From contig NC_043003.1 in NCBI RefSeq assembly GCF_006345805.1, forward strand, positions 61,938,001-62,002,000: a stretch of DNA of 64,000 nucleotides. The letters are read 5' to 3'. The position numbers were made by a program, and so were the translations under genes. The number at the start of each line of letters is the position of its first letter. The first letter of the stretch is position 1. Positions 2,128 to 53,558 of the stretch are shown piece after piece. Source of the DNA: Octopus sinensis (Eukaryota). Below the pieces are notes generated by a model that ran no database searches, had not been told where the DNA came from, and worked only from the letters and a program-made list of their open reading frames with translations.

Positions 2128-2419
2128 GCAAGTATTTTCATTATGTATTTTTTAATAAAATATCATTTTCATTTTTTGCATTATTGTTTGCTAATGAAAG
2201 CATGAAAAAATTACTTTAAATCCACAGATGATGCAAAATTGATAACCAGAAGTCAAGTTTTTATAATTGCTAAAATTTTAAAGCAGTTTTGATGTTCATT
2301 ATCTGTTATGTATTTTCAGTTTCATTTTTTGAATGAATTCTCTTTCAGTCTCTCTTTCCTAGCTCTTTTATAGTTATACATAAATCAATCTACCCACACA
2401 CATGCTTACCTAGACATAT

Positions 2420-2585
2420 TAGCATTGTCATGATTGCATGGTTAAAATATTTGCTTCTCATCTTCTTGGTTTTGGGTTCAATTTACTTGTGCAGCACCTT
2501 GGGCAAAAGTCTCCTACCATAGCCTTGGGTTGACCAAATTCTTATTTGTAAAATTTGTTTGATTGAGATTGTGGAATCTTTTTAG
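2420..2585 (+). mobile_element. Degenerate tRNA-derived SINE
   Basis: gcatggttaaaatatttgcttc...gggttcaatttacttgtgcagcaccttgggcaaaagtctcctaccatagccttgggttgaccaa. Confidence 0.6.
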
Positions 2586-3240
2586 ACGGCTGATTGGCAG
2601 ATTTAAATCATTGTTCTGTTAAAATCATAAGCATTTAGATAAGGTCCCTAATCTGATGATATCTCCCTCCTTTCCTTCTCTAGCCCTGAATGACCAAAAG
2701 ATGGTTGTAGCTACTGTCCGTCTTTGACTAAATTGTAAAACAATAATAATTGGTATATAAAACAATAGCTAATTTAAATGTATGTTGGTTGGTTGATTTC
2801 TGCAGTCACCCTTTACATTGTGTAGGGAGAGGAAGAGAGAGAGAATAAAAGAGAGATACAGTGTGAGTTAACATAAGAGGTGCAGGATGATTCACATATG
2901 AGGTTTGATGGTAGACATTGAGTAAAAAAATGATATACACATACATATACACACGATGAGAGAGATATAGTGTCAGAAGAGAAGAGGGAGTAAATGACTG
3001 AGTAGTTACAGGTGAAGTTATAGAAATGAAAAACAAATAAAAAAATTAATTTTATTTAATGTTAAGATGACAAATATTTTTCTTTTGAAAATTATTATTC
3101 ATTTCACCATTTTATTTAAGCTGTAAGAAATTTGATAAAAGTTGATTATAATTATTGTATAAATGCCATAATTCCTAATATAAAATATGATGGCAAAAAT
3201 ATACTTCCAGAATTACCTGTCATATGATGGTTAACACTTT

Positions 3241-3248
3241 AGTAGTAA

Positions 3249-3310
<62 letters not shown>

Positions 3311-3500
3311 ATTTTGGCACAAGGCCAGTAATTTTAGGGGAAGGGGTTTAGATGATGGCATCAACCCTAGTACTTGACTGGTACTTAACTCTGAATGGAT
3401 GAAAGGCAAAGCTGAGCTCAGTAGCATTTGAAGTCAATGTAAATAACTTGAAAAAATGGTGCTAAGCATTGTGTCCAGTGTGCTTAAGAATCTGCCAGCT
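3241..3500 (-). mobile_element. CORE-type SINE with (TAG)n/(CTA)n tail at 3241-3310
   Basis: ggcacaaggcc...tacttgactggtactta...ggatgaaaggcaaag is shared with the copies at 33383 and 50490. The ORF-track poly-Tyr ORF is this microsatellite. Confidence 0.75.
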
Positions 3501-5714
3501 TGCTGCCTTAATAATAATGATACTGGTTTCTGGTTTAAGTACAAAGCTAACAATTTTGAAGGTAGGGTGGGGAGTAGTTCATATCATCAACTCCAATACA
3601 TGATTGATGCTTTGTTTTATCAACTCTGGATGGATGAAATGTAAAATTAGATTTCCACAAAATTTGAACTTAGAATGTAAAGTGTTGGAACTAATACTGC
3701 AAGCTGTTTTTTTTTCCCAATACACTAATGATTTTGCTAATGCTCACACACACATACATGCACATTCAAATACACCCACACAAAGATACAAATATCTTTA
3801 TATGTTAACCCACATGTCTGCACAGGCACACACATAAACAAAATTTAAATATGTAAATGAAAAAATAGTTCTCTTGTTAGCTTTAATGAAGATTACTGCA
3901 ACAGCTTTTTTATGACTAGCAGAGCTATTGACTAACTGAAATCCTGTGTAAGTGACAATTGTATGAACACTTGTGTATTTAATATATTTTGAAGGTGGGA
4001 TAAGATTGTATATTTGAATTACAATCTACCTGACAGGCTTTCACCTGTTTATCATCTTCTGACTTTCTTCAAAAGGTTGATCTTAAGCTATGTCAGAAGG
4101 TGAGTATTAAACAGTGGGATTAGACCTGAGCACCTTATGATTATGAAGCAAATTTCATGACCATTTGGCCATGCTTTGTCCTTATCTATTTGTCTGTTTA
4201 TGCATAGACAAGATTGCAGAAATTAACAATCTGCTTAGTGATAATACTAATTTCTCAGGATTCAGAAAGACAACACTGCTCAATTAAAAGTTAAAATTAA
4301 ATCAATTTCTGCTTCAAACAAACAATATGATCTACTCCATTTCTCCACATTGAAGAATTCACTTGAGCGTATATTTATGGAACAGTGAAAATGCACTAAC
4401 AGTACAGTTTTCTATTCAATAATTTTACAAACATACACACCAACACATCCGATTGCTAAACATTACATAACATTATCAACAATAAACACCAGTGAGATAC
4501 AGCATATGTTTATCTGATAGGTTCCTGGGGATCTTAAATGGTATAAACCAAATAGGCAATATATCTACCTTACAACTGAAAAGAGGAAAATAGAAATTAA
4601 TTCTGAGAGAAAATAATATCATTAGATTAGTTGGGAATGGTAATAAGTTTGGTTTTGAATTTTAGTGATGTGCCAAAAGTTATAATCATATACAATATAA
4701 CAATAGAAACTTTGAAATATTTTATTAATTAATCATATTTTAGTTTTTGATTACAATTGAATGATTATTCAGTATAAACATTTGGTTTTGGCATATCATA
4801 TGTATATAATTTAAAATAATATATGAACAAATTGAAAACAATTCCTGATTAATTATTTTAATTGTCTAGCTTCGAAAATCAATCAGGCCTGCTTTATCTC
4901 TCAAGCACTTACTTCCACCAAAGAATTTTAATTTCTGTTTAATTAGCTACTGTGTTGAGTTCAAATCAGGCTGAAGCTGACTTAGCCTTATCTACAGTCT
5001 GAGTACTGCAAAGATCTATAACATAGTGAATTTCAATCCATTAGATGTAGAACTACTGTCAAACATGGTTACTCTTTTTTTTTTTAACAATTTAAATAAA
5101 GAGTTCACATGATAAATTGTATGTTTATACTCAATATCAAATGATGATCAATGCATAGAAAGATATGAAATTAATATACTGAAGGAAAGAAGCACTTATT
5201 CATGTAAATTAGTTTTTTTAGAGCACTAAATGTTTCCATTATTTGATTCCAAACTCGCAATGGATGCTAAGTTTTGTTTGCTTTTTTATCAAACTGAAAC
5301 CAATGATATTTTTTGTTCATTATGAATAGTCTTAAATAATGACTAGTTATGTAGTTCAGAAACTAATTTGTATTTAGAAAGTTATTTGAATTATGATTTC
5401 TTTTATAACAAGTCTTTCGTTATTCATTTAGGTAAGAGAGCCTTGCAGTTATGATGTTAAAGAAATTAGAAGTTGCTCTGTTTAATATTTTCATAAGTTG
5501 TTTACATAGGAAGTCTGTTTCAACAACTCAAAGAAACAGCCATGGATCTCAAGAAATTAGCACTTCATCAAATGTCTATTGTTCTAATACTGAAAATAGG
5601 AAAAAGTTTACACTGTACTATAGTACTAAAGGATTTTAGCCAATACAGCATATATAGACAGATATGAACACCTTGCATTATATTCAATATTTTTGTGGAC
5701 AAAGTCAAGAAAAA

Positions 5715-7287
5715 GAAATTCACCTTCAAAATAAGCGCAACTATGCCTCCCCTGGTCTCGATGGAGTTACATACCTGCTTCTCAAACGTGGCAGGCACTT
5801 CCTTTTACACCAGCTTTCTATTTTCTTCCAGTACTGTCTCAACAATGGTGCTACTCCGGAGCAGTGGAAAACTGCCAGTGTCATTCCTCTGTTCAAAAAG
5901 GGCGACCGCACATCACCTGTCAACTATCGCCCAGTCAGTCTCACTAGCTGTATTGCAAAACTGATGGAATCGTGTGTCAGAGAAACACTCTGGAACTTCT
6001 GGAGCTCTCACAGTCTCATCCGACCCTCACAATATGGATTTGTCCCTAACTCCAGCTGCAGTGACCAGCTTGTCGAGTTCCTTGAGGACATTACTCAGAT
6101 TACTGACAGTGGCTCATGGGTGGATGTTGTCTACCTTGACTTTGCTAAGGCTTTCAACTCTGTGCCACACAAAAGGCTTATGGTGAAACTCTCTGCAATG
6201 GGTGTGGGGGAGACCTTTTTAACTGGTTGAAATCCTTCATCCTCAGCCGAAAGGAGGTAGTCACAGTTCTAGGACAGCACTCTACACCATATGAGATGTC
6301 ATCGGGTGTACCACAGGATCTGTCCTTGGTCCCCTCTTGTTTGTGGCATACATTAACGACATAGATGCCAATTTAAAGAATGCCACAGTATTGAAATATG
6401 CAGACGACATCAAGCTGTACCTTGAAATCAAGAGGACAGATCCTGATGTCTACAACTCTTTCCTGCAATCAGACCTAGACACAATGCAGCAATGGATCAC
6501 AGACTGGCAACTGAAACTGGCTGTGGACAAGTGTACCACCATGCATTTTGGGAGAAAAAACCCTGCGTTCACTTACTCCCTCCACAACACTGATATCAAG
6601 AAATCCTCTTGCGAGCGTGACCTAGGCATCACTGTCAGCAGTGATTTGCGTTGGTCAAAGCATATCTCTAAGATTGTCAGGAAGGCCGAGGGTGTCTTGG
6701 CATCACTCAGCAGGTCTTTTGTTAGCCGCTCTCCAGCCATCTATTTAAAACTGTATACAGCTATGGTACGACCACACTTGGAATTCGCATCATCAGTTTG
6801 GAACCCCTATCTTGCACAGAACATTGACCTCCTGGAATCTGTCCAGAGACGTGCAACCAAACGCATACCCTCCATCAGACACCTACCATATTCTGAGCGC
6901 CTTGTTTCCCTGGGCATGGATTCACTGAAGCTCCGGCGTTTGGCGACGGACTTGGTAAACACCCACAAAGTTATCAACCACCTCACCAACAACAACACTG
7001 AACACCTTTTTGATCTCCATGTGTCTAACACACGTGGACATGCCTACAAAGTCAGAAAACAATACAGCTCCCATGACTTTCGGAAACATTTTTTCACGCT
7101 CAGAGTTGCTGAAGCATGGAATAAACTGCCTGCGTCAGTTGTTGACTGCCATGACACTGCATCTTTTAAGGCCCTCATGCTTTCCGAAATCCGCCGAAAC
7201 TACACCTGATTATATATACACTTTAGATGAGTTGTAGTGCACCTGAGCACTGTACACAATTATTATTATTATTATTATTATTATTAT
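5715..7287 (+). mobile_element. 5'-truncated CR1-clade LINE: ORF2 reverse transcriptase with two -1 frameshifts, 3' stem-loop and (ATT)n tail
   Basis: Motifs SPGLDG, PEQWKTASVIPLFKKGDRTSPVNYRPVSLTS, QYGF, DVVYLDFAKAFNSVPH, GVPQ(G)SVLGPLLF, YADD, RPHLEFASSVWNPY, TRGH, RVAEAWNKLP. Stop at 7209, AGTGC-ACCTGA-GCACT hairpin at 7236-7251, (ATT)n about 7258-7287. Confidence 0.96.
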
Positions 7288-10200
7288 AAACATATAAAGA
7301 ATTGGCTAGGTAAACACTTCACTGAAGTTTCCCAGAGTATTGAGATCATAATACTATCACATTCAAGACTGGAAGTGATAATCATAAAGATGGCTGTAAA
7401 AAGTATCTTAAATCTGTAAAGATCAACCACTGATTAGCAAAACTATATCTAAAGACTTGAAGAAAATGTGAAATATAGCTATAACATAGGTTGGCTGTTA
7501 TAAAGATTTGATAGCTTCTCCAGCTCAAAGATTTTAGAAACATTAGATGTAAGCATAGAGGCACCAGTGGTATGCAGGTATATCAAGCATGCTGTAAGTT
7601 AAATAGGAAACTATTTCTCTAGCCAAGACAAACAATAGAATAATAAGAGCAAAGTTAATTTCTGTAGGAAAAAGAATATCTCAAAGGGATAGTCTTTCTT
7701 TGCTCTTCATCAGTTTGACACTATAGTACCTCTAAATAAAATGCTACACCAGCATTGAAATGATTAGAGGTATTATGGTGATAATTAATGCTACTGTATA
7801 TGAATGAACGCACGCAATATGCAAGAGTTGAAAAATTACTGGAAATTCTTAAGAGAGGTGTAGAATGGTTCAATGAGTTGAATTGCTGTAAGAAGTGAAA
7901 TAATCTAACCATGTCAGACGTTAGTCTTTCTTTAGGAAAAGGAAGAAAAAGAAAGTGTGTGTGTGTTACTGGCAAGGTTGAAAAGTTGTACATGAGAAAA
8001 TGAAATAAGGGAGTGATATGCGGAGGTAGATGTAGAGAAAGAGGTGGGAAAGCCAGTAAGAGATGATGTAGGTAGTATAACTAGGAAGAAAGTAAAGTGT
8101 GAGGGAAGAGTGCTCAAAATTTGTAACTCGTTGAAAGTTGAGAGAGGTGTAAAAAGCTAGGTCAAGTACTGTGTGCCAAAAGGGCACACAGTAACACAGA
8201 AACACGTACAGAAGAGAAGAGGAAGGGGAAAGTGAATGCTAGTGGTAAACAAACAAGAGACTGTAAGGAATCTGTGGTGATGGTCAAAATCATAAAGAAG
8301 TCCAAGTAGCTGAGGGCTGAAATAATAAACAGAACAGTAATGAAGCACACTAACTAATAAAATTTGAATATATGCCACACAATATATATAATAATATGCA
8401 CAATGAATGTACAAAACTGAATGTGTCACAATGCCAATAGTGGCCATACACCAATCAAAACAGTTCTTGAGGTGGGAAGAGCTAAAAGTGAAAGAGACTC
8501 AGAAAGTTGAAGCATGTACATAGGCTCTCTGGGGAAAAGGTATCCCTTTCATTTTTTACTCTGGGTGTGAGCAGAAATTTGTGTACAAATTTTATTTCTC
8601 TTTGCTAAGTAAATGTGCATCCATGCAGGTAACTATCTTCAATTAAAAGAAATGTGATTTCATTTTGAAACCTTATCTGCACATATTTTCCCTTCATATG
8701 TTAGTTGTAAAATGCATGTGCATGCAAAAATGCACAGCTTAGAAAAATTTGGCAAAGACTCTGGGTGTTAAAAATGGGACAAAATAAATGTACCAAGGCT
8801 ACTTTGAAGAGTGGATGACTCATAAAAATCAATATCTTTTTTGATGCTGCAACAAAAGAATTAGTCTGAAGAAAAATACTTAAGAATCAGTAAATTAAAT
8901 AAAATGCAACACGCGTAAGTAAAATCATATGCCAGAAAAGAATTTAGATGTTTTAGATTAATACTTGAGTGAACTAATTGTTGAAAATATGATCTTAGGT
9001 GTCCAACTTTGTAGTTGTTCCAATCATATACTATAATTATTTTATATTGAAACAGAAATTAAGTAAATTTGTACAAATAGACAGATAAAACAAGAAAAAA
9101 TAATTACAGTATTTAAGCTACATCACATACAGTATTTAAAATAATTCAGACAGAATAAATTTAACACAAGCACATGATTGTAGAGGTCATCTGCAGTAGA
9201 AAAATATTGTAAAATAACTACTATGGGATTACAAGAATATCTAATAGAGAATCAATGCAGCCAATACAAATATCTATAAATGTGTTTGGAACATGTTTTG
9301 TCTTTAGAGAGGCCAATGGGTATAAAAAAGAAATGTATGTATCAGACAGCATTAGAGCAACAAAAGAATCTATAAAAAAAACAATAAAAATATTTGGGAA
9401 AAAAGAAAGAAGTAACTTTTAATATAAAATGTTATGTGGTAGAAACTAGAAAATTTCTTATACAGGGATCCACTTTATTATGAAAACTCTAGTTATGGAA
9501 TTCCACACTTAAGAACATTGTAAAGTAAGACCAAATTTTGAGATGTGGCTGATGATTGTGTCGTTATGGAAGCTTGAGTAAGGTAAACTTTAAAAAAATT
9601 TAAGTTGTGATGTGTGTATAAAAAAGATACATTATTTTTTAGAAATACTATTTGATCTAGATTGTGTGTCTGTTGCTGCTGCTGTGCAGATTTTTGCCTA
9701 TTACTGTTGCTGCTGGATTTAACTTTTACAAATGTATAGTATAGTGTTTTACCCTTCAAGGTGACATAAAAGCAGTCATCAGGTGGAGGTGAAGGCAAAA
9801 TGGAGAAGGGATTATGTAAATGTTTTAAAAAGGTTCGATGTGTGAGAGAAACTCAGCCACGTTGCATTTGTGACACAAAAGACAAAATTAGCAAAGATTT
9901 CATGCAGATACTTCAGTAGCTATCTAACCATTGTTTTCTCATAGGCATGATGCGATTCTTAACATGGAATGGCTCCTGAATGTGTGGGTAAATGATCAAG
10001 CAGGATGTAATTTGCTGATAAGCAAATGAAGGCTAAAAATATTTTTCTTGTTTATTCCTTAATGTATTCTTCTTAATTTTTTTTATTTATACTATGTTGT
10101 ATGCATTTAAAATAGTTATTTTCATGCATAAAAATGGTTCTATTTTATGCTTTGTTTTTTCTGAAAAATCTTTTGTGGATGCACATCTAAAACTATAATA

Positions 10201-16375: not shown

Positions 16376-16395
16376 CACACACACACACACACACA

Positions 16396-16436
<41 letters not shown>

Positions 16437-16589
16437 CTCTCTCTCTCACTCATGCACATAGACACTCTCTCACACACCCACATACACACACACACTCTCT
16501 CTCTCACTCATGCACATAGAAACTCTCTCACACCCCCACATACACACCCACCCACCCACTCTCTCTTTCCCATACATGTGTGCATATGT

Positions 16590-16620
<31 letters not shown>

Positions 16621-16945
16621 AACTATGAAAACTGTAATAGTAATGCATATGGGTGAATGTATAGAGATAGATATGTGTGCCAGTATGTGTGTTTCATACA
16701 TGTGTATGAACACACACATGTATGAAACCATGACATTGGAACATGATGTAAGCAAACTCTTCAAACTGTCCAAACAATGCCAGTATAGAGAATGGACACT
16801 AAAAGGTGATGATATATATATCTGCTTATATGTATTTATGCATGTTTATTTGTGTGTGTATATATATATGTGTGTGTGTGTATGTAGGTATACATGCATA
16901 TATGCACATACATACGTATATATACAATGCATACATGAATATACA
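16376..16945. repeat. Compound microsatellite block (CA)n/(CT)n/(TA)n/(TG)n with an internal duplication of about 60 bp
   Basis: Directly visible; ctctctctcactcatgcacataga occurs twice (about 16440 and 16500). Confidence 0.9.
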
Positions 16946-17162
16946 CATCATCATCATCGTTTAACATCCACTTGCCATACTGGCATGGTTTGGACAGTTT
17001 AACTGAAGACTGGCAAGCCAAGTGGCTGCACCAAGCTCCAATCTTCTCTGGCAAGGTTTCTACAGCTGGATGCCCTTCCTAAGGCCAAGAACTCTGAGTA
17101 TGTAGTGGTTGCTCTTTTATCTGCCACTGGCATGGGAGTCCATGAGGTAGCACTGGCATCAA
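16946..17162 (-). mobile_element. RTE LINE 3' end, (CAT)n on +
   Basis: catcatcatcatcgtttaacatcc...tttctacagctggatgcccttcctaaggcca. Confidence 0.8.
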
Positions 17163-17252
17163 CCATATATACTTATCGACATATAAATAATTATATTTAT
17201 ACACATACACATATATATACATGTGTGTGTCTGTATATATAAAATGTTTATA

Positions 17253-18087
17253 CAGGATGTGGTGAATAAACTGTCACCTAAATTATGCAAAAATGAAAAT
17301 AACACTGACATCTCATTTTAACAGATATATTTACAAAAATTACTTTAAAATATCTTGAAATACTAAATTTATTCAATAACATCTCCATTCACTTCAACCA
17401 TGGCCTCCAGACAACTCCGGAATCTCCTGCAACTCTTCTGGACAGTCTCCTTGTTTAAGTTGGTGAATGCTGCCATAACCCTTGCCTTCAGTTCATCTCT
17501 GGTGTTACAAGGAATTTTGTTGGTCTCTTACTCAACTGTGCCCCACACATAATCAAGGGAGTTGCAATCTGAGGAGTTAGGTGGCCAGATGTTTGGGGTG
17601 GTGTGGTTGCAGATATTGCTTGACAGCCATGACTGGGTTCTGCTTGTGTGGCATGGTTCAGAGTCCGGTTGCCAGACATAGGGTCTTCCAACAGCCACCC
17701 TCTTCACCCAGGACAGCACTACGTCCTCCAGACACTTGATGCAGGCCTTTGTGTTGAGTCTGAGGCTGTGAGGGAAGATGAACAGAGGCATAACATCGCC
17801 ATCATTAGTGATCACTCCAAACACCATGATATTGACTGGATGTTTGATTTTTATTACACTCAGTACATGTCCTCAGACTGACACCCAAATACTCTGAAAT
17901 GTTAATATAGGAGCTTCTGGCATGAATGTCATACAGTACAGCATACCATTTCCTAATTTCTGGCTGAGTGAATTGCATTATGGTGCTGTTTTTCTTACAG
18001 ATGGTGCCCAACTGACCATAATATGCTGTGTAGTTGACAAAATCAAAAACAAATAGTGCACATGAACAATTTGCCCATCACACCCTG
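17253..18087 (-). mobile_element. Internally deleted Tc1/mariner element of maT (DD37D)-like type
   Basis: TA-flanked imperfect TIRs caggatgtggtgaataaa / tttgcccatcacaccctg. Transposase remnant MVFGVITNDGDVMPLFIFPHSLRLN...VWQPDSEPCHTSR...WPPNSSDCNSLDYVWG has 36 residues between the 2nd and 3rd Asp in this decayed copy. Confidence 0.88.
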
Positions 18088-18330: not shown

Positions 18331-18472
18331 AATCATACACGCATGCACACACACACACATGTATATGTGCATATTCATGTATATCTGTGTGTGAATGTAT
18401 ATACACACACACAGATATATATATATGTGTGTATATATATATATATATTCATATATATACATATTCATATAT

Positions 18473-18729
18473 ATCATCATCGTCATCATCATCGATCAAC
18501 GTCCGTTTTCCATGCTAGCATGGGTTGGATGGTTCGATTGGGGTCTGGGAAGCCAGAAGGCTGCACCAGGCTCCAGTCTGATCTGGCAGTGTTTCTACAG
18601 TTGGATGCTCTTCCTAATGCCAATCACTCTGTGAGTGTAGTGGGTGCTTTTTACGTGCTACCAGCACAGGAGCCAAACGAGGCTGGCAACAGCCATGATT
18701 GGTTGGCGCTTTTTATGTGCCATGGCATG

Positions 18730-18730
<1 letters not shown>
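18473..18730 (-). mobile_element. RTE LINE 3' end
   Basis: (CAT)n followed by ttttccatgctagcatgggttgg...gtttctacagttggatgctcttcctaatgccaatcactctgtgagtgtagtgggtgctttttacgtgc. Confidence 0.85.
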
Positions 18731-18769
<39 letters not shown>

Positions 18770-18914: not shown

Positions 18915-20340
18915 GATGGTATGATGCATGTGTGTGAACAGCCATGCTACATGGCAGTGAAACATGGGCTTTGATTACTGAGAACATGTGTAAGCTTGCA
19001 AGGGATGAAGCCAGTATGCTCTGCTGGATGTGTAATGTCAGTGTGCATACACGACAGAGTGTAGGCGCCCTGAGAGAAAGATGTGGTGTGCAAGAGAGAC
19101 AACTGTGCTGGTATGGTCATATGCTGTGAATAGTTGAGGACAGCTGTGTGAGAAAGTCTCAAACTCTATCAGTAGAAGGAACATGTGGAAGAGGTTGACC
19201 CAGGAAGACCTGGGTTGAGGTGTCAAGCACAACCTGCGAACATTGGTCCACACCGAGGCAATGACAAATGACTGAGACCTTTGGAATTATGCTGTGCTTG
19301 AGCAGACCCGGCAAGCCAAGTGAGACCATAACCTATGCCAGTGCAGTATAATCAGCCCATTTAAATTGCACTTGCGAAGTGAAATCATTGTCATGGCCAA
19401 TGCCAGTGGAATGTTAAAAGCACCATTCCAGCATGATCATTGCCAGTGACGACTGACTGGCTCCCGTGCCAGTGGCACATAAAATGCACCATTCGAGTGT
19501 GATCATTGCCAGTGTTGCTCTACTGGCTCCTGTGCTGTTGGCATGTATTGGGTTGTCCGGAAAGTTTGTGCCAATTTTTTAAGGAAAGTAAAAGGTCAAT
19601 AGATACTTGCGTTTCATTTTTAATCAACCAAATATGAACCATTTTGTTGCACAATGCGTCTCCATCTTTCCTTTATCTTGAAAATACCCTCTTCCCAGAA
19701 TTGAGGTGGTTTCATGCAAAGAATTCATCAAGGTATCTTTTTACGTCATCCAAGGAATTGAAATTTTTACCATTAAGACTATTCTGCAGAGACCTGAATA
19801 AGTGGAAATCCGAAGGAGCGATATCTGGTGAATATGGAGGGTGGGGTAACACATCCCAGCCGAGCTGCAGCAATTTTCATCTGGTTCCCAAAGCATCAAG
19901 TGCCGAAAATGAACTTTCTTATCTTCCATTTTAAAGGGTTACAGAATTAACACAGGTTATTGGAACATAAACCTTCTTCCATGAAAAGATAGCTTAAACT
20001 GTGCTCTAAATAGAGGTGTAGTCAAATCCTATTTCATAGACTTAACCATGTTCTAAAATAAGTTGAAAGGTAAGCTACTATAAATTGGCACAAACTTTCC
20101 AGATAACCCAATAAAAAGCACTATTTGAGCATGGTTGAATCTAGTTCCACCTGACTGACCCTCTTGCCGGTGGCACGTAAAAATCACCCACTACATTCTC
20201 AGAGTAGTTGGCATTAGGAAGGGCATCCAGCTGTAGAAACTTTGCCATATCAAACTGGAACCTGGTGCAGCTGTCTGGTTTGCCAGACTGGCCAACTCAT
20301 GCCAGCATGGAAAGCAGATGTTAGACGATGATGATGATGA
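18915..20340 (+). mobile_element. RTE LINE fragment (ORF2 C-terminus, 3' UTR repeats, (GAT)n), interrupted by a mariner MITE
   Basis: MLHGSETWALITENMCKLARDEASMLCWMCNVSV...RQLCWYGH; repeat units ggcacgtaaaa..cacc; tail gacgatgatgatgatga. Confidence 0.88.
19548..20111 (-). mobile_element. Internally deleted mariner element with intact TIRs and TA target-site duplication
   Basis: TIRs ttgggttgtccggaaagtttgtgccaattt / aaattggcacaaactttccagataacccaa; TA at 19546-19547 and 20112-20113. Encodes LGWDVLPHPPYSPDIAPSDFHLFRSLQNSLNGKNFNSLDDVKRYLDEF. Confidence 0.95.
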
Positions 20341-20351
20341 CATACACACAC

Positions 20352-20512
20352 ACGCTCTCAGAGTGGTTGGAATTACGAAGGGTATCTAGCCATAGAAACT
20401 TTGCCAAATCAGACTAGGGTCTGGTGCAGCCCCTCAGCTTACCAGTCCAGGTCAAAGGAACCAACCCATGCTAGCATGGACAACATATGTTAAATGATGA
20501 TGATGATGATGA
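20352..20512 (+). mobile_element. Second RTE 3'-end copy in tandem
   Basis: ctctcagagtggttggaattacgaagggtatctagccatagaaactttgcc...catgctagcatggacaacatatgttaaatgatgatgatgatgatga. Confidence 0.8.
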
Positions 20513-20554
20513 TATATATATATACATGGATATATATATAGTGGATTCACCTAT

Positions 20555-25096: not shown

Positions 25097-26033
25097 CTTT
25101 ATTTGAAGATTCATTAGTACTAAAATTCTTAATACCTAACCATCCATCAGCCTCCTGTCATTATGTAAATTTTAGAAATACTTCTCAAGATTTTGCAATT
25201 TGAAAGATGAAACTCTAGGTTGTTCTATTCTCAATTCAAGCTGTCAAAGCTCTTGTGGTTTATCCACAAGGTCCATTTTCACAAGACTGAATCCATATTA
25301 ACATATATATGATCTCTGTATACATATTTATGAATGACAACTTTGGATTGGGGATATGAGAAGACATGAATGGTACATGTAGTTTGATATAAAATTTAAT
25401 TTTGTCAAAGTGAAACTTTAAATGTAACTAATCCTAATTCAAATACAGAGTGTACTTTACTGCATTTCAGAATTGTAGCATGAACATTAAAAGATTAAGA
25501 ATCAATAGTTAATGGATTTTGATATAATATTCCCTTGTTGCCTTGCATTATATCTCTGGGCAAAACTCCTTTCTCAGTGACTTGTCCTGGTTCTAGAGAT
25601 ACTGGTGTTCTTTCATGTAGATAATACTTATAATTTTCTTGTACAGAAGCTACCTGTGATCTCAAAATTGCTTCAAGTACTGTAGTGGTGCATAGCATTT
25701 TGTTAATTTAGTCACATGAGATAAACACACTTTTCTTTCTTATGGTTTGTAGTAGTAAAAGCATTTTATGTAAATATTTGTTCTAGATTTATCATTTATG
25801 TTTGTACATTAAATTTTATTATAATTCTTGTAAAGTTGACTTGTCAAATTGTATAAATAATCATTTTTCATATCAGCACAAGGCATGTGGCTGGTTATGG
25901 AAGCAGTCAAACCGACCCCCGTTCTTTCAAATCGCAAAATCTTGAGAAGTATTTCTAAAATTTACATAATGATAGGAGGCTGATGGATGGTTAGGTATTA
26001 AGAATTTTAGTACTAATGAATCTTCAAGTAAAG
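25097..26033. repeat. Near-perfect 111-bp inverted repeat (arms 25097-25207 and 25923-26033, 715-bp spacer)
   Basis: Arm 1 ctttatttgaagattcattag...ctcaagattttgcaatttgaaaga equals the reverse complement of arm 2 except at 3 transitions. Confidence 0.95.
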
Positions 26034-34143: not shown

Positions 34144-35620
34144 ATGTATATACATGATTACCCCTGGGAGCCCCTCTATGCTGATAACCTGGACCTCATA
34201 GCAGAATCACTACTAGAACTAGAGAAGAAATTTCAGGTGTGGAAGCAAGGTTTAGAATCGAAGGCCTTTAGAATCAATGTAGCAAAGACTAAAGTTCTAG
34301 TAAGTAGGAAGGTGAACACATCACATACCCGCTTCAGGTAGGTGGCCCTGCTTGATCTGTAGAGAAGGTGTTGGCAGAAACTCCATAAGATGTACCCAGT
34401 GTAAGCTATGGACACATAAGAGGTGCAGCAACATTAAAGGAAGATTAACCGGGAAGATAGCTTTCGTGTGTGGCAGATGCACAGGGGCAATAAACACCTA
34501 AGATGCTCAGAAAACAGATTCCATCTCATGCCAGGGGAAGAAACTAGACGTAGTTGATAGATTCCGCTACCTAGGTTACCAAGTTCGTAGTGGGGGTAGA
34601 AGCTCAGAGAGTGTTACCACTAGAATAAGAATAGCCTGGGCAAAGTTCAGAAAACTTCTAACCTACTGGTGACAAAGGGCCTCTCACTCAGAGTGAAAGG
34701 TAGCTTGTACGATGCATGTGTGCGAACTGCCATGCTTCACGGCAGTGAAACATGAGCCATGACTGCTGAAGACATATGTATGCTCAAAAGAAATGAAGCT
34801 AGCATGATCCTCTGGATATGTAATGTCAGTGTGCACACATGACAAAGTGTAAGCACCTTGAGAAAAATTTTGGACATAAGAAGCATCGGATGTGGCATGC
34901 AAGAGAGATATTTGCATTGGTATGGTCTTGTACAACAGATGGGTGAGGAGAGCTGTGTGAAGAAGTGCCACTCCCAAACAGTGAAAGGAATCTGGGGTAG
35001 AGGGAGACCCAGGAAGACATGGGATGAAGCATGTAGTAGTGAAGTATGACCTTCGAACATTGGGCCTCACAGAGGCAATGACAAAGGACCAAAGTCTCTG
35101 GAGATATGCTGTGACTGAGAAGACCTGGCAAATAAAGTGAGCTCACAGCTGTAACCCACACCAGTGTCACATAAGCAGCCCATTCAAAAGTTCCTTGGAT
35201 CGTAGGGTGACATGCCATGCTTGAGGAGACCTATTGAGTCAAGTACATCAAAATCAAATCAATTTACATTCAAATGGAAATTGTAGTTGTGATCCCTGTG
35301 CCAGTGGCACGTAAAAAGCACCATCCAAACATGGCTGATGCCGGCGCCGCCTTGACTGGCATCTGTGCCGGTGATATGTAAAATGGACCTCCGATCATGG
35401 TCAATGCCAGCCCCTCTGACCCCTGTGCTGGTGGCAAGTAAAAAAGCACCCACTCCACTCTCGGGGTGGTTGGCGTTAGGAAGGGCATCCAGCTGTAGAA
35501 ACACTGCCAGATCAGACTGGAGCCTGGTGCAGCCTCCTGGCTTCCCAGACCACAGTCAAACCATCCAACCTATGCCAGCATGGAAAAAAGAAGAATTTAA
35601 ACAATGATGATGATGATGAT
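34144..35620 (+). mobile_element. 5'-truncated RTE LINE (decayed ORF2, 3' UTR repeats, (GAT)n tail)
   Basis: YPWEPLYADNLDLIAESLLELEKKFQVWKQGLESKAFRINVAKTKVLVS; LHWYGLVQQM; GRGRPRKTW; tail at 35604-35620. Confidence 0.92.
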
Positions 35621-36790: not shown

Positions 36791-39112
36791 GGTTAGGTCA
36801 CTTTGAATTATAGAATTATAGCTCACTGGGTTTTCAGTCCTCCTACTTTTCTGGTCCCAAACTATTAAGTCAGGGTTTTTTTAACAGCCCACTGGACACC
36901 TTGTTCACACTTTATCAAACCACAATTTCATTCCTTCCTAATTTATCCAACCTTTCAAATAGACAAATATAAATGCCATTGGATATTCTTTCATGAGACA
37001 ATGTGCTTCTTTTAAAAATTGTAAAAGGTAGCAGTTTTATGCTGTCAGTACAACAAACTAATACAAATGTTATAGTGTGTCTTTTATAGCCATAATTTAA
37101 TAATCACTGCTTTAGCTCCCTTCGATTTTGCTATTTTGTTGATGGTATATCAAATATCAAAGGGACTTAGGAAGTATTATCATTTTTCCGCTATTCCTGT
37201 TCTAGCTCTCATATAGAGGGTTTTTTCTCCTTATAAATCTGGATTATCATGATGCTAACTCTCCAAAAGTCAGTGACATCTCTGTCTATTGCTATGACTT
37301 AAATAATGTGTGATCATTTGGATGAGTATTAAAGAGCCCATACTCCTTGTCTAGTTCAGGTCACTTTACATTTACCCTACAGATAGTGTTTGCTATGTCT
37401 AGCAGCTTTGAGCTGCTCCTATTTCCTTCAAGTCCTTACCATGTGATCAGTTGGTGGCAACCAAACTATTGAGCAGTTGTTCCATTACCATGTTTCTTTG
37501 CTTGACAGTTAGCTTAAATTTAATGCATTAGCAGTATTTTTAGTTTTTCAACCATAAGTCAGAACTTCTATAGGAAATTTATCATAAATAAACTATATTA
37601 TGAAAGGTACTATTTCTCATCTTTATCTTTTTTCACATTAGCAGTATACTTATTTATATTTTGCTCAAGAAAAATTGCCATACAGGGTGTAAAACTCATA
37701 TTTTTGGCTGTGATATATTATGTTACCATAATTAACTTCCAGGGTGGTGAACAATGGCTGTGGTTTTGTTGTCATCCAGACATTGCAAATGGCTGACACG
37801 CAGATGAAAGTTTAACATTCCTTTCATGTTTCTCAGAGCACTTTTCCTGTTGATAATAAACAAGTCATTAATGTAAAGCATGTATTAGGTATAGGTTATG
37901 TATGCTGAAGAATAAGGTTCAATGAGGTAATGTGACTACCCTACATAACTCCTGTACCATAAGCAATTTTTTGAAAGTTCGTGCAAACAAACTGATAATT
38001 TGGTTTGTTTTCAGTATTTTATAAGTAACTGCATTTTATGCTGTGGGCTTAAGCTCATCTACCTTCTTAGCCTACAGTGTTCAGTCTCCCATCTGTAATA
38101 GCATTGCATTAGGTGCAGAGCAATTATTTGGTATATTTAAAAGTAGAAAAAGCACGTCTTATACAATGGCGAATGCAGTTAATAATTTGATAGATACCAC
38201 CTGTCACACCCTTCCAAATAATGCGTACACACATATACAATAACGAATGTAACTAAACTTATGATAAATAGAAGCCAAATTTCCATCTTACATTAGGATA
38301 GGACACTTTAGACAATGTAATTTTAATATAAATGAAAGGACAACAATTTACGTATTTCCTAAACTAGTATAAAACTTTCTGGAGGAAGTGTTTCTGTTTG
38401 TATAGACTATGCAGATTAGAGTAAGCTTGGTCTTTAAATTCAGTCATTGAAAGTAACAGTTGTATTCTTATTTTATTAGAACCCCTCCGCAAAGCATATT
38501 CTTCTCAGTTGGCAAGATGGAAAAGCAATCAGTTTGTACATCAATTTATATAGAGTAAAGTGAATTCAGTGATGCTGAATATGAATATAAAAAATTTGGG
38601 TAAAGGAAAATACCTCAAAGGGGCATTCTGCATACTGAATAAAAAAAAATGCAAGGTTCCACATATGTAGTCTAGTGAACTGATAAAACTTTGATAATCT
38701 AATACTATGTAAGCTATTAATAACTATAATTTTGTTAATAATCAAGGGAAATAATTCCAGGTGTATAAGTATGAAAATGTTTAGATAATATAAATATAGT
38801 ACTGGATTTGATCTTTAAAACCAACTGGTAAAAGCAATGGATCTGTTTTGGTCTCATTAGTTCTTCCACAATTTATATTGCATTTAGTTGGCAGGAGTAA
38901 GAGTGATCTGCCTCTCTGTCAGTCTGTCTGTCAATTTGTATATATAAAAATACAGGGCATAAGGTGATAGTAAATATCAATAACCCAATAATATCTAGTG
39001 ATATTGATTGTTAATCTAATATATTTTATTTATATTTAAATGATAGAAATAAGTAACAATCTTTAACACTTAAGACATGATTGATCTCAAAAATATAGAA
39101 AAGACTTGATTT

Positions 39113-39335
39113 TCATCATCATCATTTAATGTCTGTTTTCTATGCTATCATGGGTCAGACAGTTTAACAGGAGCAGGCAAGTCAGAAGACTGCACCAAGT
39201 TCTATTGTCTGTTTTGATATGGTTTCTATGGTCAATGTCCTTCCTAACACCAACCACTTTACATAGCATACTGAGTGATTTTTATGTGGCACCAGCAGCA
39301 GTGAGGTCACCAAATAAATCACAAGACCTCTCAAC
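39113..39335 (-). mobile_element. Degenerate RTE 3' end
   Basis: tcatcatcatcatttaatgtctgttttctatgctatcatgg...ttcctaacaccaaccactttacatagc. Confidence 0.65.
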
Positions 39336-44670: not shown

Positions 44671-44711
<41 letters not shown>

Positions 44712-45122
44712 AGACATGTGTATACCACATACATATTTATATATATGATGAAGTGTTTTATCGAAGCTGAAAAGACTTAACAAACTGTTACTCATGAAAC
44801 AGCTGTCTGGTGATCCATTACATGAAACTGTAACAGCCTTCAAAGTTTTTTTCATCTTCAATAAAACACCATTTTACTCTACCATTAGTATTTGAGTGCT
44901 ATTTTCTCTACCTAGCTTTGCACCTATATGCTTGCATGTATATGTATAAATAAATGTGTTTACAGAGGCAATTATGCAGATAAACAAACGAAATATAATA
45001 GCTTGGGTTTGCTACATATAGGTATACATGCTATATATAGGTGTACATGTAAACTGAAAGAAAGCAAAGACTGAAGATTTTCAGATGATGAATATTTAAG
45101 GATAGATATATAGATGTTTATG

Positions 45123-45472
45123 TATCCGTTGCCAACGCCGCCCCGACTGGCCTCCGTGCCGGTGGCACGTAAAAAGCACCATCCAATTGTGGCCATTGCC
45201 AGCCTCGTCTGGCCCCCGTGCCGGTGGCACGTAAAAAGCATCATCCGATCGTGGCTGTTTGCCAGCCTCGTTTGACACCTGTGCAGGTGGCACGTAAAAA
45301 GCACCCACTACACTCACAGAGTGGTTGGTGTTAGGAAGGGCATCCAGCTGTAGAAACACTGCCAGATCGGACTGGGCCTGGCACAGCCTACTGGCTCCCC
45401 AGACCCCAGTTGAACCGTCCAAGCCATGCTAGCATGGAAAACGGACGTTTTACAATGCTGATGATGATGATG
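45123..45472 (+). mobile_element. Young-looking RTE 3' UTR with 3 tandem GCCGGTGGCACGTAAAAAGCACC-type units and (GAT)n tail
   Basis: Units at about 45157, 45218 and 45282, then the conserved ggaagggcatccagctgtagaaac and tail. Confidence 0.88.
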
Positions 45473-45535
45473 AATAGCTCAAACTTACACAGTGTGCAAA
45501 TGACTGAGAAGACTATTTTCTATATATTTTCTATT

Positions 45536-45583
<48 letters not shown>

Positions 45584-46514
45584 GGATATATGGATCTAGA
45601 TTGCGAGATCATATGTCAGATACAAGTTATTCGAATATAGTTCCTCAAGTTCAGGTGTATTTAGAGTTGTGGACACCATGTATACATCAAGGTATGTATG
45701 ATTGGGATTATATTATGTGAATGTGTGTTTAGCTGCATGTAGGCATCTGGGTAATTCGTTCAATGAATTTATTTATATTGTGTTCCTTTGTTAACATCAA
45801 GAGCGACTCCTTGGAGCATAACTGGCATTTTCAGGATACAGTGATGTAGGGACTCATGAGTCTAAGTATGGACCATGTAATGTTGTATTTTGTCTTCATT
45901 TCCTTAAGCCTCCAGATAAAATCGACCAGTGATTTTACATGTTATTTAATAATAATACAAAAAAGTAACAACAAAAGAATGAGACCTTGAGAAATAGAGG
46001 ATTATTTATATATGTTATAATTTAGAACAAACAGTAAAAGGTGTCATTATAGTTCTCGGAGTTTCAAATGTCAGAGCAAAGAGCTATGATACATTCTTGT
46101 CAACTATCAATGGCAACAAATGCTATGAAAAACCGTTGAATAAAAGGGAAGTAACTCTAATAGATGGAAAATATATATACATAAAAAATACATGCAACTA
46201 TATTCTCACAATACATAGGCATAAAACCTCCTGCGTTTACAATGTCTACATACATATACACTCATACAAAGATGTATATGCACATACACACACATATATG
46301 TATGTACGTACTTGTACATACATATATCCACACACACATGCACACATGTATTTATATATATATATATATGTATGTATGCAACTTCATCCTCATATACACA
46401 TAGGTGCTTACATGCATACACATAACAGCACACACTCACACACACGAACACACATATATAAAGTTCTTACGATGACCTGCCCACATCAGCAGAACTGAGT
46501 TCTAGAAGCGCTGT

Positions 46515-47010: not shown

Positions 47011-47379
47011 ACTTATATTATGGCATTTGAACCTCAAGTGTATGCCCTGCACTTGCCACCATCTATATCTCTCTGTTCCTTTACTCAACCATCTCATTTA
47101 TATTCTGATCACCATTTCTTGTGAGTATGCCTGGCATTTTGCCAACATCTCTATCCTACTGTCTCCCACTCTCTCTCCTTCTCCTGCACTTCCCTTAGGT
47201 TGGGCAACCATGTACTTTCTTTGCAGTAGCACACCTGTTTCTGTCTTCATTCCAGATCTTTCTCTCTCTCTCTGGCCGGGTAACCTTGTACTTCTTCTAT
47301 ATTGCTATATTTGTCTCACTATAGCCTTTTCATCATCACTTCCTCCAATGCCTTGTAGAAGTTTTTTTTAATGTCTTGC

Positions 47380-47722
47380 AAGTATTTGGTGATCCTGTCA
47401 GTACAGGTGCCAATTAAAAGCACCTGGTCCACACTGTAAAGTGGTTGGTGTTTGGAGGGTATCCGGTTATAAAAACCCTGCCAAAACTGACCTTGGTCTG
47501 TGCTTGTGCCACGAAAAAGCACTACTCACCTTGCCTGTGTTTGTGCAACATAAAATGCACCAAGTCCACTCTGCTGAGTGGTTGGTGTTAGGAAGGCATC
47601 CAGCTGTAAAAGTCCCACCAAAACTGACACAGAAGTCTGGTTCAGGCTTAGGTCTGACTGGCTCTTGTAGTACTGTCCCACTTATGCTAGCATGGAAAAT
47701 GGAGTTAAACGATGATGATGAT
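47380..47722 (+). mobile_element. RTE 3' end
   Basis: gtggttggtgttaggaaggcatccagctgtaaaa...atgctagcatggaaaatggagttaaacgatgatgatga. Confidence 0.8.
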
Positions 47723-48815
47723 ATATATATATATACATACATACATATATACACACACATACACATATAGACAGATAGATAAATATAAACACACATATAA
47801 TCATTCATTATTCTTTTTACATTCAATCTGAATGTCTGATAAATGTATGTGTGTATGTGCATCCATATATATATTTTTAGCTCCTGACCAGCTCTAGTTG
47901 AACAGGTGTATGATCAGGATTTTTAGCCATAATCATTTCATCTGTTTGTATATCTATATCGACATTGTGCCTTCCTTTTTTAAGATAGTAGGGTGTGATT
48001 TAAGGGAAGTTGCTGCTGGGAAAGGTTTGATTTTTAAAAGAAGACAGGGGCTAAGAAACATTCAAAGAGCTGTTACCTTTGTTGATAAATGGTTTCTCAC
48101 TTCGTACACAAGCCATACTTGTTTGATCACACAACTTTCTTGAACTCTACTTTGATCACTAGGACTCTACTAACCACTTCTGTGCAACCAATGTCCAGGT
48201 TCTCAGTGTACCAGAGATCATAATTCACCTGAAATAGGTATCAAATTCTTCCATCTCAGACCCCACTATCATAAAATAGGATGACAAAATGTAAGCTTAG
48301 ATATACAAACCGGTGGAGTAGTCTATTGCTGAGATACTTTTGAGCATAGATTTGTTCAACCATGGCAGCACAGCAATGAGATATAGACATTGAATGTGAA
48401 AAATTTATGAAGGCTTGGAAGAACTGGAGTATGTTGAATTTATAGTGTTAAGGTTCATGGAAGAGAACACTAGTTAACATACAATGGCCAGGCATTTAAG
48501 GTATGATCTGATGTATTTGTTATTTTTATATAACTTTAGGTTAGCCCTGACAATTTTCCTTATTCGTTTTAACTAATTTTAATGTTTCTGAAGATATTTT
48601 ATTGGCCATATTATGTCAGGTATACTTCAATATTTTTTGTGAAAGTTTTTGGAAGAAATGAGTACTTTTGAATAACATCAAAATGTTTACTTTCTGGTAG
48701 TACTAAATCATAAATTTACGTAAGATACAATGTGTGTGTATATATATTATATATATATATAGATGTATGGATGTATGTATATATATACACGTACATGCAT
48801 ATATAGATACATATT

Positions 48816-48853
<38 letters not shown>

Positions 48854-50489
48854 GATAGACTCATTCAAGTTCAAAATCAAATAAATTATTTTGGATTTGT
48901 TGCATCACTTCCTTAATTAGATGTAATTTATCCTAATTTTTGAAATCAAATCTTTTAACTTAATTGGTAGCTAGATAAAATCTAAAAAAAAAAAATTGAA
49001 ATACATTCAAGACATATATCCACTTTAAGATTTAAATATATGTAATAAAAACCAAATATAAACTAACTGTAAGAAAATGTTTGTAAAATGAAGAAACAAA
49101 AACTCTTGCTTGGAACATTATTGCTTTTATAGAATTTGTAATTATGTTATTTATTTCTAGACTTCTTATCTCAAACTCATCTTAAATATATTAAAAGAGT
49201 TGTTATTTATACATATTTTTTATCTGCTTACAAATTTTGAAATCTACGTTAATCTGTAAATCTATTATGCTTTAAATTTTTTTCCCAAATGTCTTCACTT
49301 GGTTATAGAGTATGTTATTTTGTTTCATTGAATTAGGCAAGTTTCTTTACAGGAAGTTATTAGGCTTTAAAGTTTATAGTTTTACATTATATTTATGCTT
49401 ATATAAGACTTAATATGAATAATTTTACTTGATTAAGTTAAGTAACCCTTATAATTTATATCAAACATTTTAGACATCTTCTTTACTGTTGTTAACTTTT
49501 TACTTTTTCCTATCTGGAGAATTTTTTAAGCCATAGCATGCTGCATTTTCTCTTGAATTGTTTCCCCTGTCACTGCCCTGTTACCACTATAGGTGACATG
49601 ATACCCCTTCAGTGTGCTAAAGATTAACCAATATTTACACACTATCATTTATACCCTTATCTGCTTTGAGCTTCACCATTCCCCTTCCCTCCCCATCAAA
49701 AGAAATATTTCACATTCTCTTGATCCTCTTTATGTTTGATATTGGAAAGATTGTTTATAAACTAGTTAATGATTTATTTTATCTGTATTGCCATTGATAA
49801 TTTATTCATTCTTAGCTGCATCAATATTTTCTGTTCAATCTTCAATATTTCAGGTATTTTAAAATGTATCTTCAATGATGTCAAAGTTTAAGGATATCAT
49901 TGAAAGTGTAGTACATATTCTTACTTATTCAATTTTATTTATCAATAATAATGCAAATGGAGTTGGCATAACATAATTCGACATTACCATCTCATACACA
50001 CATAATTTTTTTTCCTGAAATAATTCAATTTTTAACAAAATACTACTTAGAACGCTTGTATAACATATATAAATAATGCATATTTATAGCAATATGCATT
50101 ATTTATGCAATATGTTTTCAAATAGCAATAACTTTCATTGGACACCTGCATAAAGATTTATTCTAAAAGTAAACATACAAAATACTTCTGATTTTCTTGT
50201 AATTTATACCACTATCATATAGCATTTTTTAAAAAATTAATTTTCTGTTTTAGAATGGATTGAAAGAATCAGCTATACAGCATAACACCAATCCTTGTGA
50301 TAATTTGTTATCTTATCCATTAGGATCAGTATCGTCTTACTTTTTCTGTTCTTTACTACAACATACATCAGTTATATCACTATTGAATTAACATTTATTT
50401 TCAATTTGCATTGGATGTTCACATCAGGACAGTCATTTCTTTTACAGCTATTACAGTTGGATGCTGTCTTGATTGACTAGCACTTACGT

Positions 50490-50725
50490 TTTTCTGTAAG
50501 ATAATATTCTTTTTTACTCTAGGCACAAGGCCTGAAATTTTGGGGGAGGGGGTCAGTCGATTAGATCGACCCCAGTACATAACTGGTACTTAATTTATCA
50601 ACCCCGAAAGGATGAAAGGCAAAGTTGACCTCAGCTGAATTTGAATTCAGAAAGTAAAGCCAGACGAAATACTGCTAAGCATTTTGCCTGGAATGCAAAT
50701 GCTTCTGCCCGTTCACCACCTTCCT
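50490..50725 (-). mobile_element. CORE-type SINE, well conserved
   Basis: ttttttactctaggcacaaggcctgaaattttgggggagggggtcagtcgattagatcgaccccagtacataactggtacttaatttatc...gaaaggatgaaaggcaaagttgacctc. Confidence 0.88.
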
Positions 50726-52047
50726 GTAAGATAATATTGTGTATCTAATGTATAAGACTTGATACACATCTATAGCCTTTATAGGGTCTTTGGATTCCAA
50801 GTCTATAGTTCATGACCATATATTACCACCCTTATTTGCATGCTTTAAAAATCTGCCATTCACACTGGGAGAAAAACCTTTGTTGCTGACAGTTTAAAAA
50901 CTAAGCAAACTCTTTCCTCTACCTTCTCATTGTATGTGGTATGCATTTACTATATCTACCTTCAATATTGTGATTGGTTACATCACCTTCATAACATAAA
51001 CTACTTATTACATATTAGCTGTTAAATTAATTCCATAAGTGCTACAGGTTCTAATTAGTTTTATGTAACCATCATTACTTAAGTTTGTACTGCTTATATT
51101 TCAGTGGGAGATCCCATTTCAGTTTTCATGAAGCTGTTGCTTGCACTGAGTACACAATATTTTGACTTTACCTAGTCCTTTACTACTTTTCAAGAGAGGC
51201 CATTTACAGGATAGCATTGGGATGTTATACTATCTGTTACTAATTGGATCTTTTCTGTATTAACTTTTAGACTCTTGTCCTGTCATTTGGGCTTTGAACT
51301 TTTTCTGCAGCCTTTTGGCAGATTTCTGCAATGAAAATCAAGTCATTAGCATATGTAACTTTCCACTCCTAATCTGCAATTATATTGCTTCAGGAACTGT
51401 AATGAATAATTGGAAGCTGTAGACAGAGCCTTGGTTAATATCTAACTGTATTTTGAAATTCTTCACTGAAAACTTCACTAAATTTAGTGTTATTTCTAAT
51501 CTTATGTCTACCTTAATTTATAGCTTGAATAATTCTTACAAGATATTCATCTCTCCCCAGTTTCTTCTGTGCTCACCAAACGACAGAGCATGAGACCCTG
51601 TTATAGTCCATTTCAAATTAACAAAGGCAAAAAGTTGTTTGTTCTTTAATGATATCTTTGCTTGTTGCTTTTACAAGAAATGTTATTCTTGGTTTCCCTA
51701 TCATGTGCTAATTTTGTGTAGACTTCCTTTATTGAAGCCCTAACAATGGCTCTTTTGAGTGCATTTTCTTTCATCCTAAGACAATTTATGATGATAAAAT
51801 TATACAAATCATTGAAAATAACATTTTCACACTCTTTCTTAGTTAATTAAGTGATTAATTAGCATAGTGAATATATAACCTGATATTTTCAGTAGTTTGT
51901 CATCGATCACAGATTACTTTTACCTTTCCTATCTTCATCTCTATTATTGTTTTCTGAGCTTTACTGAAATTAACGTCATTTATTAATCGCCCTGCTGACC
52001 AATTTTCAGTAGAATTTCACTGATTCATAGATATTTCTTGCTGAGAC

Positions 52048-52370
52048 ATGCTTGTGTGGTTAAGAAGTTTTCTTATCAACCATGTGTTTTTGCATTCATT
52101 CCCACTGTGTGACATAGGCAAGTGTCTTCTATAGCCTGAGTCTTCCAATACCTTGTAACTGAAATTGTTAGACGGAAAACCACTGTATAAGTGTGTGTAT
52201 GTGAATGTGTATCTTTGTGTCTTCCCACCTGTGTCTGGCATTGTTTATATCAACTGTAAAATGTATTCAGCTGTTGAAAAGTTTTTCATGTGTAAGATCA
52301 GAGAATAAGTAGCTTACTAACTTATGCCCAACCCATGCCAGCATGGGAGAAGTGGGTGTGAAAATGATGA
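52048..52370 (+). mobile_element. SINE with RTE-type 3' tail
   Basis: gcttgtgtggttaagaagtt...ggcaagtgtcttctatagcc...ccaacccatgccagcatgggagaagtgggtgtgaaaatgatgag. Confidence 0.7.
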
Positions 52371-53558
52371 GAATGTCTTCCTTGCCACTAGTGAGTCTAA
52401 CTGAAACAACTTTTCTTGCACAAAACTCACATCCATTCACTATGGTTATGGTTATATCATTCCAGTTATCTTGCCAGACATAACTGCCATTGTAGCAAAG
52501 CTGACAGTTGCAAACCTGAAATTTTAAATGTGAAAGAGAGAGAGCCGTTACTGGTGCTAGTCTAATTTCTCATATAATATGATATATATATTGCACTATA
52601 GCAAGTAATGCTATAATGCATTTATAAGATAGCGTTCCTATGTAAATTTTGAATTATAATTTAATAATTCTGGCTTTTACTTATGTTGAAAAAGAATTGA
52701 TTATTTAGTTTGCAAAAATTATTTTAACAGACGTTAAAAGTAGCATAAATTTTTTGTTACATCAGTAGACACCATATTGATTTATACATTCAAAAGACTG
52801 AAAATCACTCTAGAGATTAAAAATCAGTTTGGATAAAATATGTAACCATTTATGCAAAATAAGTGAGATACAAGAGAGCCTTCAATGGTCACTCCACTTG
52901 CCTCAAATAGCAACTGAATTACCTTTAAACCATGCTCATTCTTCAAAAGGAAGGACACAGGTATTGTAGGGATCACAAATATGAAAAAAGATGGAATACT
53001 TATGGTTGGAACACCTTTGATTATAAGTCTTCTCAACTGAAGTTCACATGGAGCTGAGCCATAAGCAGGATAGTTTCTAAAGTTATATTCAGTATACTTT
53101 CTAATATAGAAGGTACTTGTTAATTTAATCCTTATCCTTGTTTCTTATGAAATTCCTCACAAATAGATTTGAACTTAAAATCCTCATTCACTTTGTGATT
53201 TCACATCTACTTTTATCAATCATAAGAATAGCAAATATATTATAATTAAAGATAGCTTTAGGTGCTCATAGCAATTATTAAATGTTCAGCCTTATAGAAA
53301 TATAAGAAAATTATATTATACATGGTCCTATGGGGCCCCTGGGTCAAGATGCTGCAGCAGTCAACACACTTACCCAAAGATAGTTCTAGTTATCATGTCA
53401 AAAGTATTAACTACTTACATACCAACAATAAATAACAACTTTTGCACAATTTTATGGATAACTAAACACACACACATACTAGCATTATTTATATATGATT
53501 ATAAAAAATATGATATTGATATCTTTTTAATTATCAAGGATATTTGTTAAATTTTCAG

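Follow-up and report, generated by a model that had tools for sequence, protein, structure and literature searches.

The 64,000-nucleotide stretch analysed here (the window) comprises positions 61,938,001 to 62,002,000 of contig NC_043003.1 of Octopus sinensis (RefSeq assembly GCF_006345805.1) and carries part of the gene for SPO11, a meiotic recombination protein that breaks DNA. Exons 2, 3 and 4 lie on the forward strand, each behind a standard acceptor, separated by two introns of very different length (Table 1). Joined, they encode a peptide of 90 amino acids (aa), CDILRKIENIILKILKSLEKGIMPSFEYANHSSWDNIK/FSVEFGLETIMEPKTSKISFGSKRSRKKF/DLLLKLLAIIYQLVQTDAYRTKR (here and below a slash marks a splice junction), which is 100% identical over all 90 residues, both junctions covered, to residues 57-146 of XP_036360701.1 (P0003; E=6e-50), annotated as 'meiotic recombination protein SPO11-like isoform X2 [Octopus sinensis]'. 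This match was obtained in an exhaustive HMMER search against 1.84 billion representative proteins; the latter was required, as a word-index protein search with the same peptide matched only a stub model from O. bimaculoides. The original prediction, made from the letters alone, had proposed three forward-strand exons that splice into the N-terminal region of SPO11, and its coordinates and lengths prove exact. It had also remarked on a gap of 51,431 bp between exons 2 and 3 with no assembly gap. There is indeed no N in the window, and the length of intron 3 agrees with the 6.3 kb given at the time.

A second O. sinensis isoform, X1 (P0028, 407 aa), likewise matches the 90-aa peptide at 100% identity and carries, like X2, both the TP6A_N and the TOP6A-Spo11_Toprim domains (4.9e-21 and 6.7e-46, respectively, for P0003). 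TP6A_N is a winged-helix domain that includes the catalytic tyrosine. The window reaches positions 1-26 only of its Pfam profile, at peptide residues 65-90, and the catalytic Tyr (…KR/DIYY…) belongs to exon 5, outside the window. A sequence search of the PDB with the N-terminal piece gave no SPO11 match. Exon 1 (MTTEDV...IPRIPR) and exon 5 (DIYYQNV...) both fall beyond the window, and therefore intron 1 exceeds 2.0 kb and intron 4 exceeds 3.9 kb. Exons 2, 3 and 4 are each present once: at neither the DNA nor the protein level was a second copy found in the window, which disposes of the idea that another exon 2 closer to exon 3 might make the annotated one an orphan duplicate. The model P0030 of the sister species O. 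vulgaris is identical over exons 3 and 4.

Table 1. Features of the window (coordinates are those of the 64,000-nt stretch; a slash marks a splice junction)
Feature	Position	Strand	Description
SPO11 exon 2	2014-2127	+	114 nt; acceptor ttttcag/G; encodes CDILRK...WDNI plus 2 nt of K; residues 57-94 of O. sinensis SPO11, 100%
Intron 2	2128-53558	+	51,431 bp; GC-AG; 33.5% G+C; no N
GC-type 5' splice site of intron 2	2128-2133	+	AA/GCAAGT; sole donor keeping the SPO11 frame into exon 3
Competing GT donor	2132-2137	+	CAA/GTATTT, 4 nt downstream of the GC donor; frame-shifting; used by O. bimaculoides partial model P0001 (...DNIKQ/AFTC..)
Candidate cassette exon	4037-4099	+	63 nt; cag/G ... AG/GTGAGT; in O. 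bimaculoides partial model P0001, whose C-terminal 22 aa match 100%
Decayed LINE fragment, sense	5436-7416	+	reverse-transcriptase open reading frames; Pfam RVT_1 E=1e-13 and 1e-9 as separate frames, 2.4e-27 joined
Other SINE-like copies	16945-17167, 19358-19547, 20111-20517, 35265-35620, 39111-39303, 45107-45473, 47401-47723, 58324-58702, 60574-60774		self-BLAST
Possible Tc1/mariner-type transposase relic	17531-17872	-	Pfam DDE_3 E=0.022, 15 bits; below the curated cut-off
SINE-like family, best copy	18467-18767	-	~300 bp, (GAT)n tail; self-BLAST
MITE-like element	25097-26033	.	937 bp; 111-bp inverted arms, 97% identical (self-BLAST)
ATG mini-exon MYTS	45678-45691	+	AG/GTATGT; start of truncated O. 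vulgaris model P0030 (MYTSR/FSVEF); exact match in the window
ATG mini-exon MLILQKEGH	52932-52960	+	AG/GTATTG; matches the start of truncated O. bimaculoides XP_014774383.1 (P0004, MLILQMEGHR/FSVEF) with one substitution
SPO11 exon 3	53559-53647	+	89 nt; ttttcag/G ... G/GTAATT
Intron 3	53648-59983	+	6,336 bp; GT-AG
SPO11 exon 4	59984-60050	+	67 nt; ttacag/A ... AG/GTATTT; TP6A_N domain begins here
Second reverse-transcriptase fragment, antisense, intron 4	61390-62260	-	Pfam RVT_1 E=1.8e-13; related to 34161-35188 in intron 2

The two isoforms differ by a 48-aa segment (IMLPSNV...IIITG), which includes VVEKDATF at the start of the Toprim domain and is missing from X2. If real, isoform X2 would be catalytically doubtful.

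The 5' end of intron 2 has a feature that the original prediction missed: its donor begins with GC. The junction AA/GCAAGT ... ttttcag/G reproduces the RefSeq protein sequence ...DNIK/FSVEF. Joined instead to the nearby GT donor, exon 3 is read in a frame that, from the sequence, stops at a TGA spanning the exon 3/exon 4 junction. A read-through model from O. bimaculoides, P0002, ends in ...NIKQVFSLCIF, a sequence that can be encoded only with a C at position +2 there too; the GC is therefore no sequencing error of this assembly. A compensated donor consensus is typical of GC-AG introns, and the octopus intron likewise has GC at +1/+2, a perfect AAGT at +3 to +6 and an AG end. It differs from them in that its assignment is inferred from reading frame and gene model, and in the presence of a GT only 4 nt away which is used in the model of another species. 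Intron 2 appears to be a spliceosomal GC-AG intron, and would be removed in a single splicing event.

Exon and intron lengths in other animals were derived by mapping SPO11 proteins back onto the fetched loci. In the clam Mercenaria (L001) and in a mammal (L005), exons 2, 3 and 4 measure 114, 89 and 67 nt, with the same phases as in the octopus, which upholds the resemblance to the human exons that had been proposed. Introns 2 and 3 are 222 and 108 bp long in the clam and 1,214 and 388 bp in the mammal, and intron 2 is ~281 bp in the limpet Patella and ~7.0 kb in the mussel Mytilus. The identical exon sizes in clam and mammal imply that the exon pattern is ancestral, and the three octopus exons are predicted to belong to a 13-exon structure ancestral to bilaterians. 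As a member of the SPO11/topoisomerase VI-A family, the octopus gene thus has the exon 2-4 sizes and phases of mammal and clam and a full protein with TP6A_N and Toprim domains; skipping of its exon 2 would preserve the frame, as it does in mouse and human (PMC7165175). It departs from other members of the family in an intron 2 that is far longer (42 times the mammalian and 232 times the clam length) and in its GC instead of GT donor. In Mytilus galloprovincialis (L003), introns 1 (~5.1 kb) and 2 (~7.0 kb) far exceed all others in a gene of 20.3 kb, which argues for an independent expansion of 5' introns in the mussel.

The exon 2/exon 3 junction is also found in spliced form. An intron-less contig of 926 bp (L004, from run SRR8281693) has exons 1, 2 and 3 contiguous, with the junction at the same position as in the octopus. 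It comes from a divergent species (76% nucleotide identity in exon 2) and would represent RNA rather than a retrocopy. After exon 3, positions 535-926 of this contig consist of non-SPO11 sequence with internal repeats (cttaactatctactccagg...) that has no match in the window; the tail could be an aberrant isoform, a terminal exon derived from a transposable element (TE) or the product of a chimeric contig.

The annotated range of SPO11 in O. sinensis is 757,589 bp. Corresponding ranges are 6,751 bp in Mercenaria, 8,381 bp in Patella, 20,282 bp in Mytilus, 15,079 bp in the mammal (in line with the ~14 kb stated for the human gene in the original prediction) and 1,532,919 bp in lungfish, and the partial O. 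vulgaris model, which runs from inside intron 2 to approximately exon 9, covers 132,807 bp. At 0.76 Mb, the O. sinensis range reaches half the 1.53 Mb of the lungfish, an animal whose genome is ~15 times larger than that of the octopus; O. sinensis SPO11 is either an outlier gene or one with an inflated annotation range. Intron 2 accounts for 6.8% of the 757,589 bp and is shorter than the mean of ~63 kb over 12 introns. Expansion is therefore gene-wide, and there is no support for its concentration in the intron following the regulated cassette exon, as had been proposed: what stands out in the window is the shortness of intron 3 and not the length of intron 2.

In O. minor the mean intron length is 5.4 kb and genome size is explained by enlarged introns and TEs (PMC6279123). 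Published medians for O. vulgaris are 2,467 bp for introns and 20,288 bp for genes (PMC10700109). Compared with these medians, intron 2 at 51 kb is ~20 times longer than a typical intron and SPO11 at ~758 kb ~37 times longer than a typical gene, which places both in the upper tail of a known heavy distribution.

The content of intron 2 is of the kind seen in TE-driven cephalopod intron expansion. The intron is AT-rich, with a G+C content similar to that of its flanks, and includes relics of long interspersed nuclear elements (LINEs), about a dozen copies resembling short interspersed nuclear elements (SINEs), relics of DNA transposons and microsatellites, so that the recognisable mobile-element sequence which defines a TE-expanded intron is present. 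Assessed without a repeat library, demonstrable repeats make up at least 21.6% of its length, and 120 short tandem arrays are among the recognisable content. Pfam searches of open reading frames of at least 78 aa found reverse transcriptase only and no nested protein-coding gene (short nested exons would escape such a search), and no Pfam domain unrelated to TEs was found within intron 2. Rfam and transfer RNA scans of the window returned nothing, and thus no recognised intronic small nucleolar RNA, microRNA or tRNA-derived head.

The reading we favour, with a probability of about 0.8, is that O. sinensis SPO11 is a single-copy gene with a genuine GC-AG intron of 51,431 bp that has become long through the accumulation of repeats, as has happened throughout the gene. 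Copies of mobile elements and simple repeats would have accumulated in intron 2 as they did across the whole ~758-kb gene, and its length would be neutral, a by-product of intron bloat across both the gene and the genome, and no device. Several points weigh against this. Support for the 2127^53559 junction comes from homology, from a RefSeq model and from a contig that resembles a transcript but belongs to a different, divergent species; two of the three octopus annotations do not bridge the intron; ~78% of its sequence is unclassified without a cephalopod repeat library; and the figure of 758 kb is one taken from annotation. The junction is already contained in the RefSeq model, and a long, repeat-filled intron is a known kind of object. 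As it stands, another such intron in a cephalopod matters little. A 407-aa meiotic enzyme encoded over ~0.76 Mb nevertheless provides a convenient natural case for asking how very long genes are dealt with in germ cells.

In O. vulgaris and O. bimaculoides, the SPO11 models are split or truncated precisely at intron 2, because the annotation pipelines did not bridge a long GC-AG intron. Catalogues of cephalopod meiotic genes should merge these split or truncated models. The absence of a link between the exons in the annotations of two species, together with the tendency of repeat-rich sequence to be misassembled, might suggest that a misjoin or mis-assembled repeats have placed exons 2 and 3 51 kb apart. 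We give this hardly any credence. A long intron by itself predicts that pipelines will fail to bridge it, the window is free of N, the RefSeq model spans intron 2 on a chromosome-scale record of 117.5 Mb, and segments used in the models of the two other species are found in collinear order close to either end of the intron (+1.9 kb relative to exon 2; -7.9 kb and -0.6 kb relative to exon 3).

These same three segments (the 63-nt candidate exon and the two ATG mini-exons) raise the question of whether intron 2 is a single intron in vivo, or is divided by internal exons or by promoters from which N-terminally truncated transcripts start. Public O. bimaculoides and O. vulgaris models use exactly these segments, all of which have good donors (GTGAGT, GTATGT and GTATTG). 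Reached through the GC donor, the 63-nt exon is in frame and would add 21 aa; reached through the GT donor, as in P0001, it is frame-shifted with a premature stop, and that model ends without a stop codon of its own. The two mini-exons contribute only 4-9 residues and look like patches with which gene predictors supplied a start codon to truncated models, one of them (45678) directly following a SINE-like copy. Among the proteins retrieved, no SPO11 homologue includes residues from these segments, and none of the three is used in the O. sinensis models. Such a division of the intron is unlikely.

A different question is whether the length has a function. The alpha and beta isoforms of mammalian SPO11 differ by exon 2. 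In mouse, inclusion or skipping of this exon depends on the elongation rate of RNA polymerase II in its vicinity (PMC7165175). By analogy, the 51-kb intron and the ~0.76-Mb gene could delay transcription or, together with the weak GC donor, could provide a kinetic window for the inclusion of exon 2 in meiosis, possibly with recursive splicing. The 114-nt length of exon 2, so that its skipping stays in frame, the rival GT 4 nt from the GC donor, the size of the gene relative to that of the lungfish and the rank of intron 2 as the longest intron of the mussel gene too are all points in favour of such a role. Within its own gene, however, intron 2 is unexceptional in length, its content is that of decayed repeats, and in clam and limpet an intron 2 of 222-281 bp suffices. 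Under first-come-first-served splicing, a long intron downstream should tend to promote rather than prevent the inclusion of exon 2. Nor was an exon-2-skipped isoform present among the octopus proteins retrieved, X1 and X2 both including the exon; absence from protein databases is weak evidence in this respect. At the textbook transcription rate of 2-4 kb/min, we estimate that intron 2 would take ~13-26 min to transcribe and the annotated gene ~3-6 h.

Recursive splicing makes a more specific prediction, since introns of this type carry ratchet sites, (Y-tract)NYAG/GTRAGT, above chance. Intron 2 shows no such excess: the window has 0 strict sites (YAG/GTRAGT) against 1.9 expected, and relaxed AG/GTRAG sites in intron 2 number 3 in sense and 3 in the antisense control, with no enrichment, one of the three sense sites being the donor of the 63-nt exon. 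With genes for which ratchet splicing or intron delay has been described (Drosophila Ubx and Y-linked fertility genes with giant introns), octopus SPO11 shares a long intron in a gene of meiotic cells; it differs in having neither a juxtaposed 3'/5' splice-site motif above chance nor satellite blocks. Nothing that we see in the sequence would support a transcription delay, a kinetic window or recursive splicing, and a functional role for the length of intron 2 is decidedly improbable. A bolder version of the same idea takes the whole octopus gene as an outlier of its genome (~758 kb, ~100 times the clam and limpet genes and half that of the lungfish), in which length, weak GC donor and rival GT would together time expression or set the choice of exon 2 in meiotic prophase. 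If true, the alpha/beta switch of mouse Spo11, which depends on polymerase speed, would have a counterpart in an invertebrate; we regard this version as very improbable indeed. No paper on cephalopod SPO11 was found in a literature search of titles and abstracts.

The repeats within the window include several families. An nhmmer profile of the SINE-like family has 19 matches covering 3,152 bp across the window; its copies occur in both orientations, are 70-87% identical and have an internal duplication of 62 nt. The element with inverted arms at 25097-26033 looks like a young DNA transposon of the miniature inverted-repeat transposable element (MITE) type. Segments of ~1 kb at 34161-35188 and 60864-61833 (and also 18919-19365) are 68-70% identical and lie in opposite orientation. 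The intron 4 copy adjoins the reverse-transcriptase fragment of the minus strand (61.4-62.3 kb), and the three segments are probably relics of a single LINE family.

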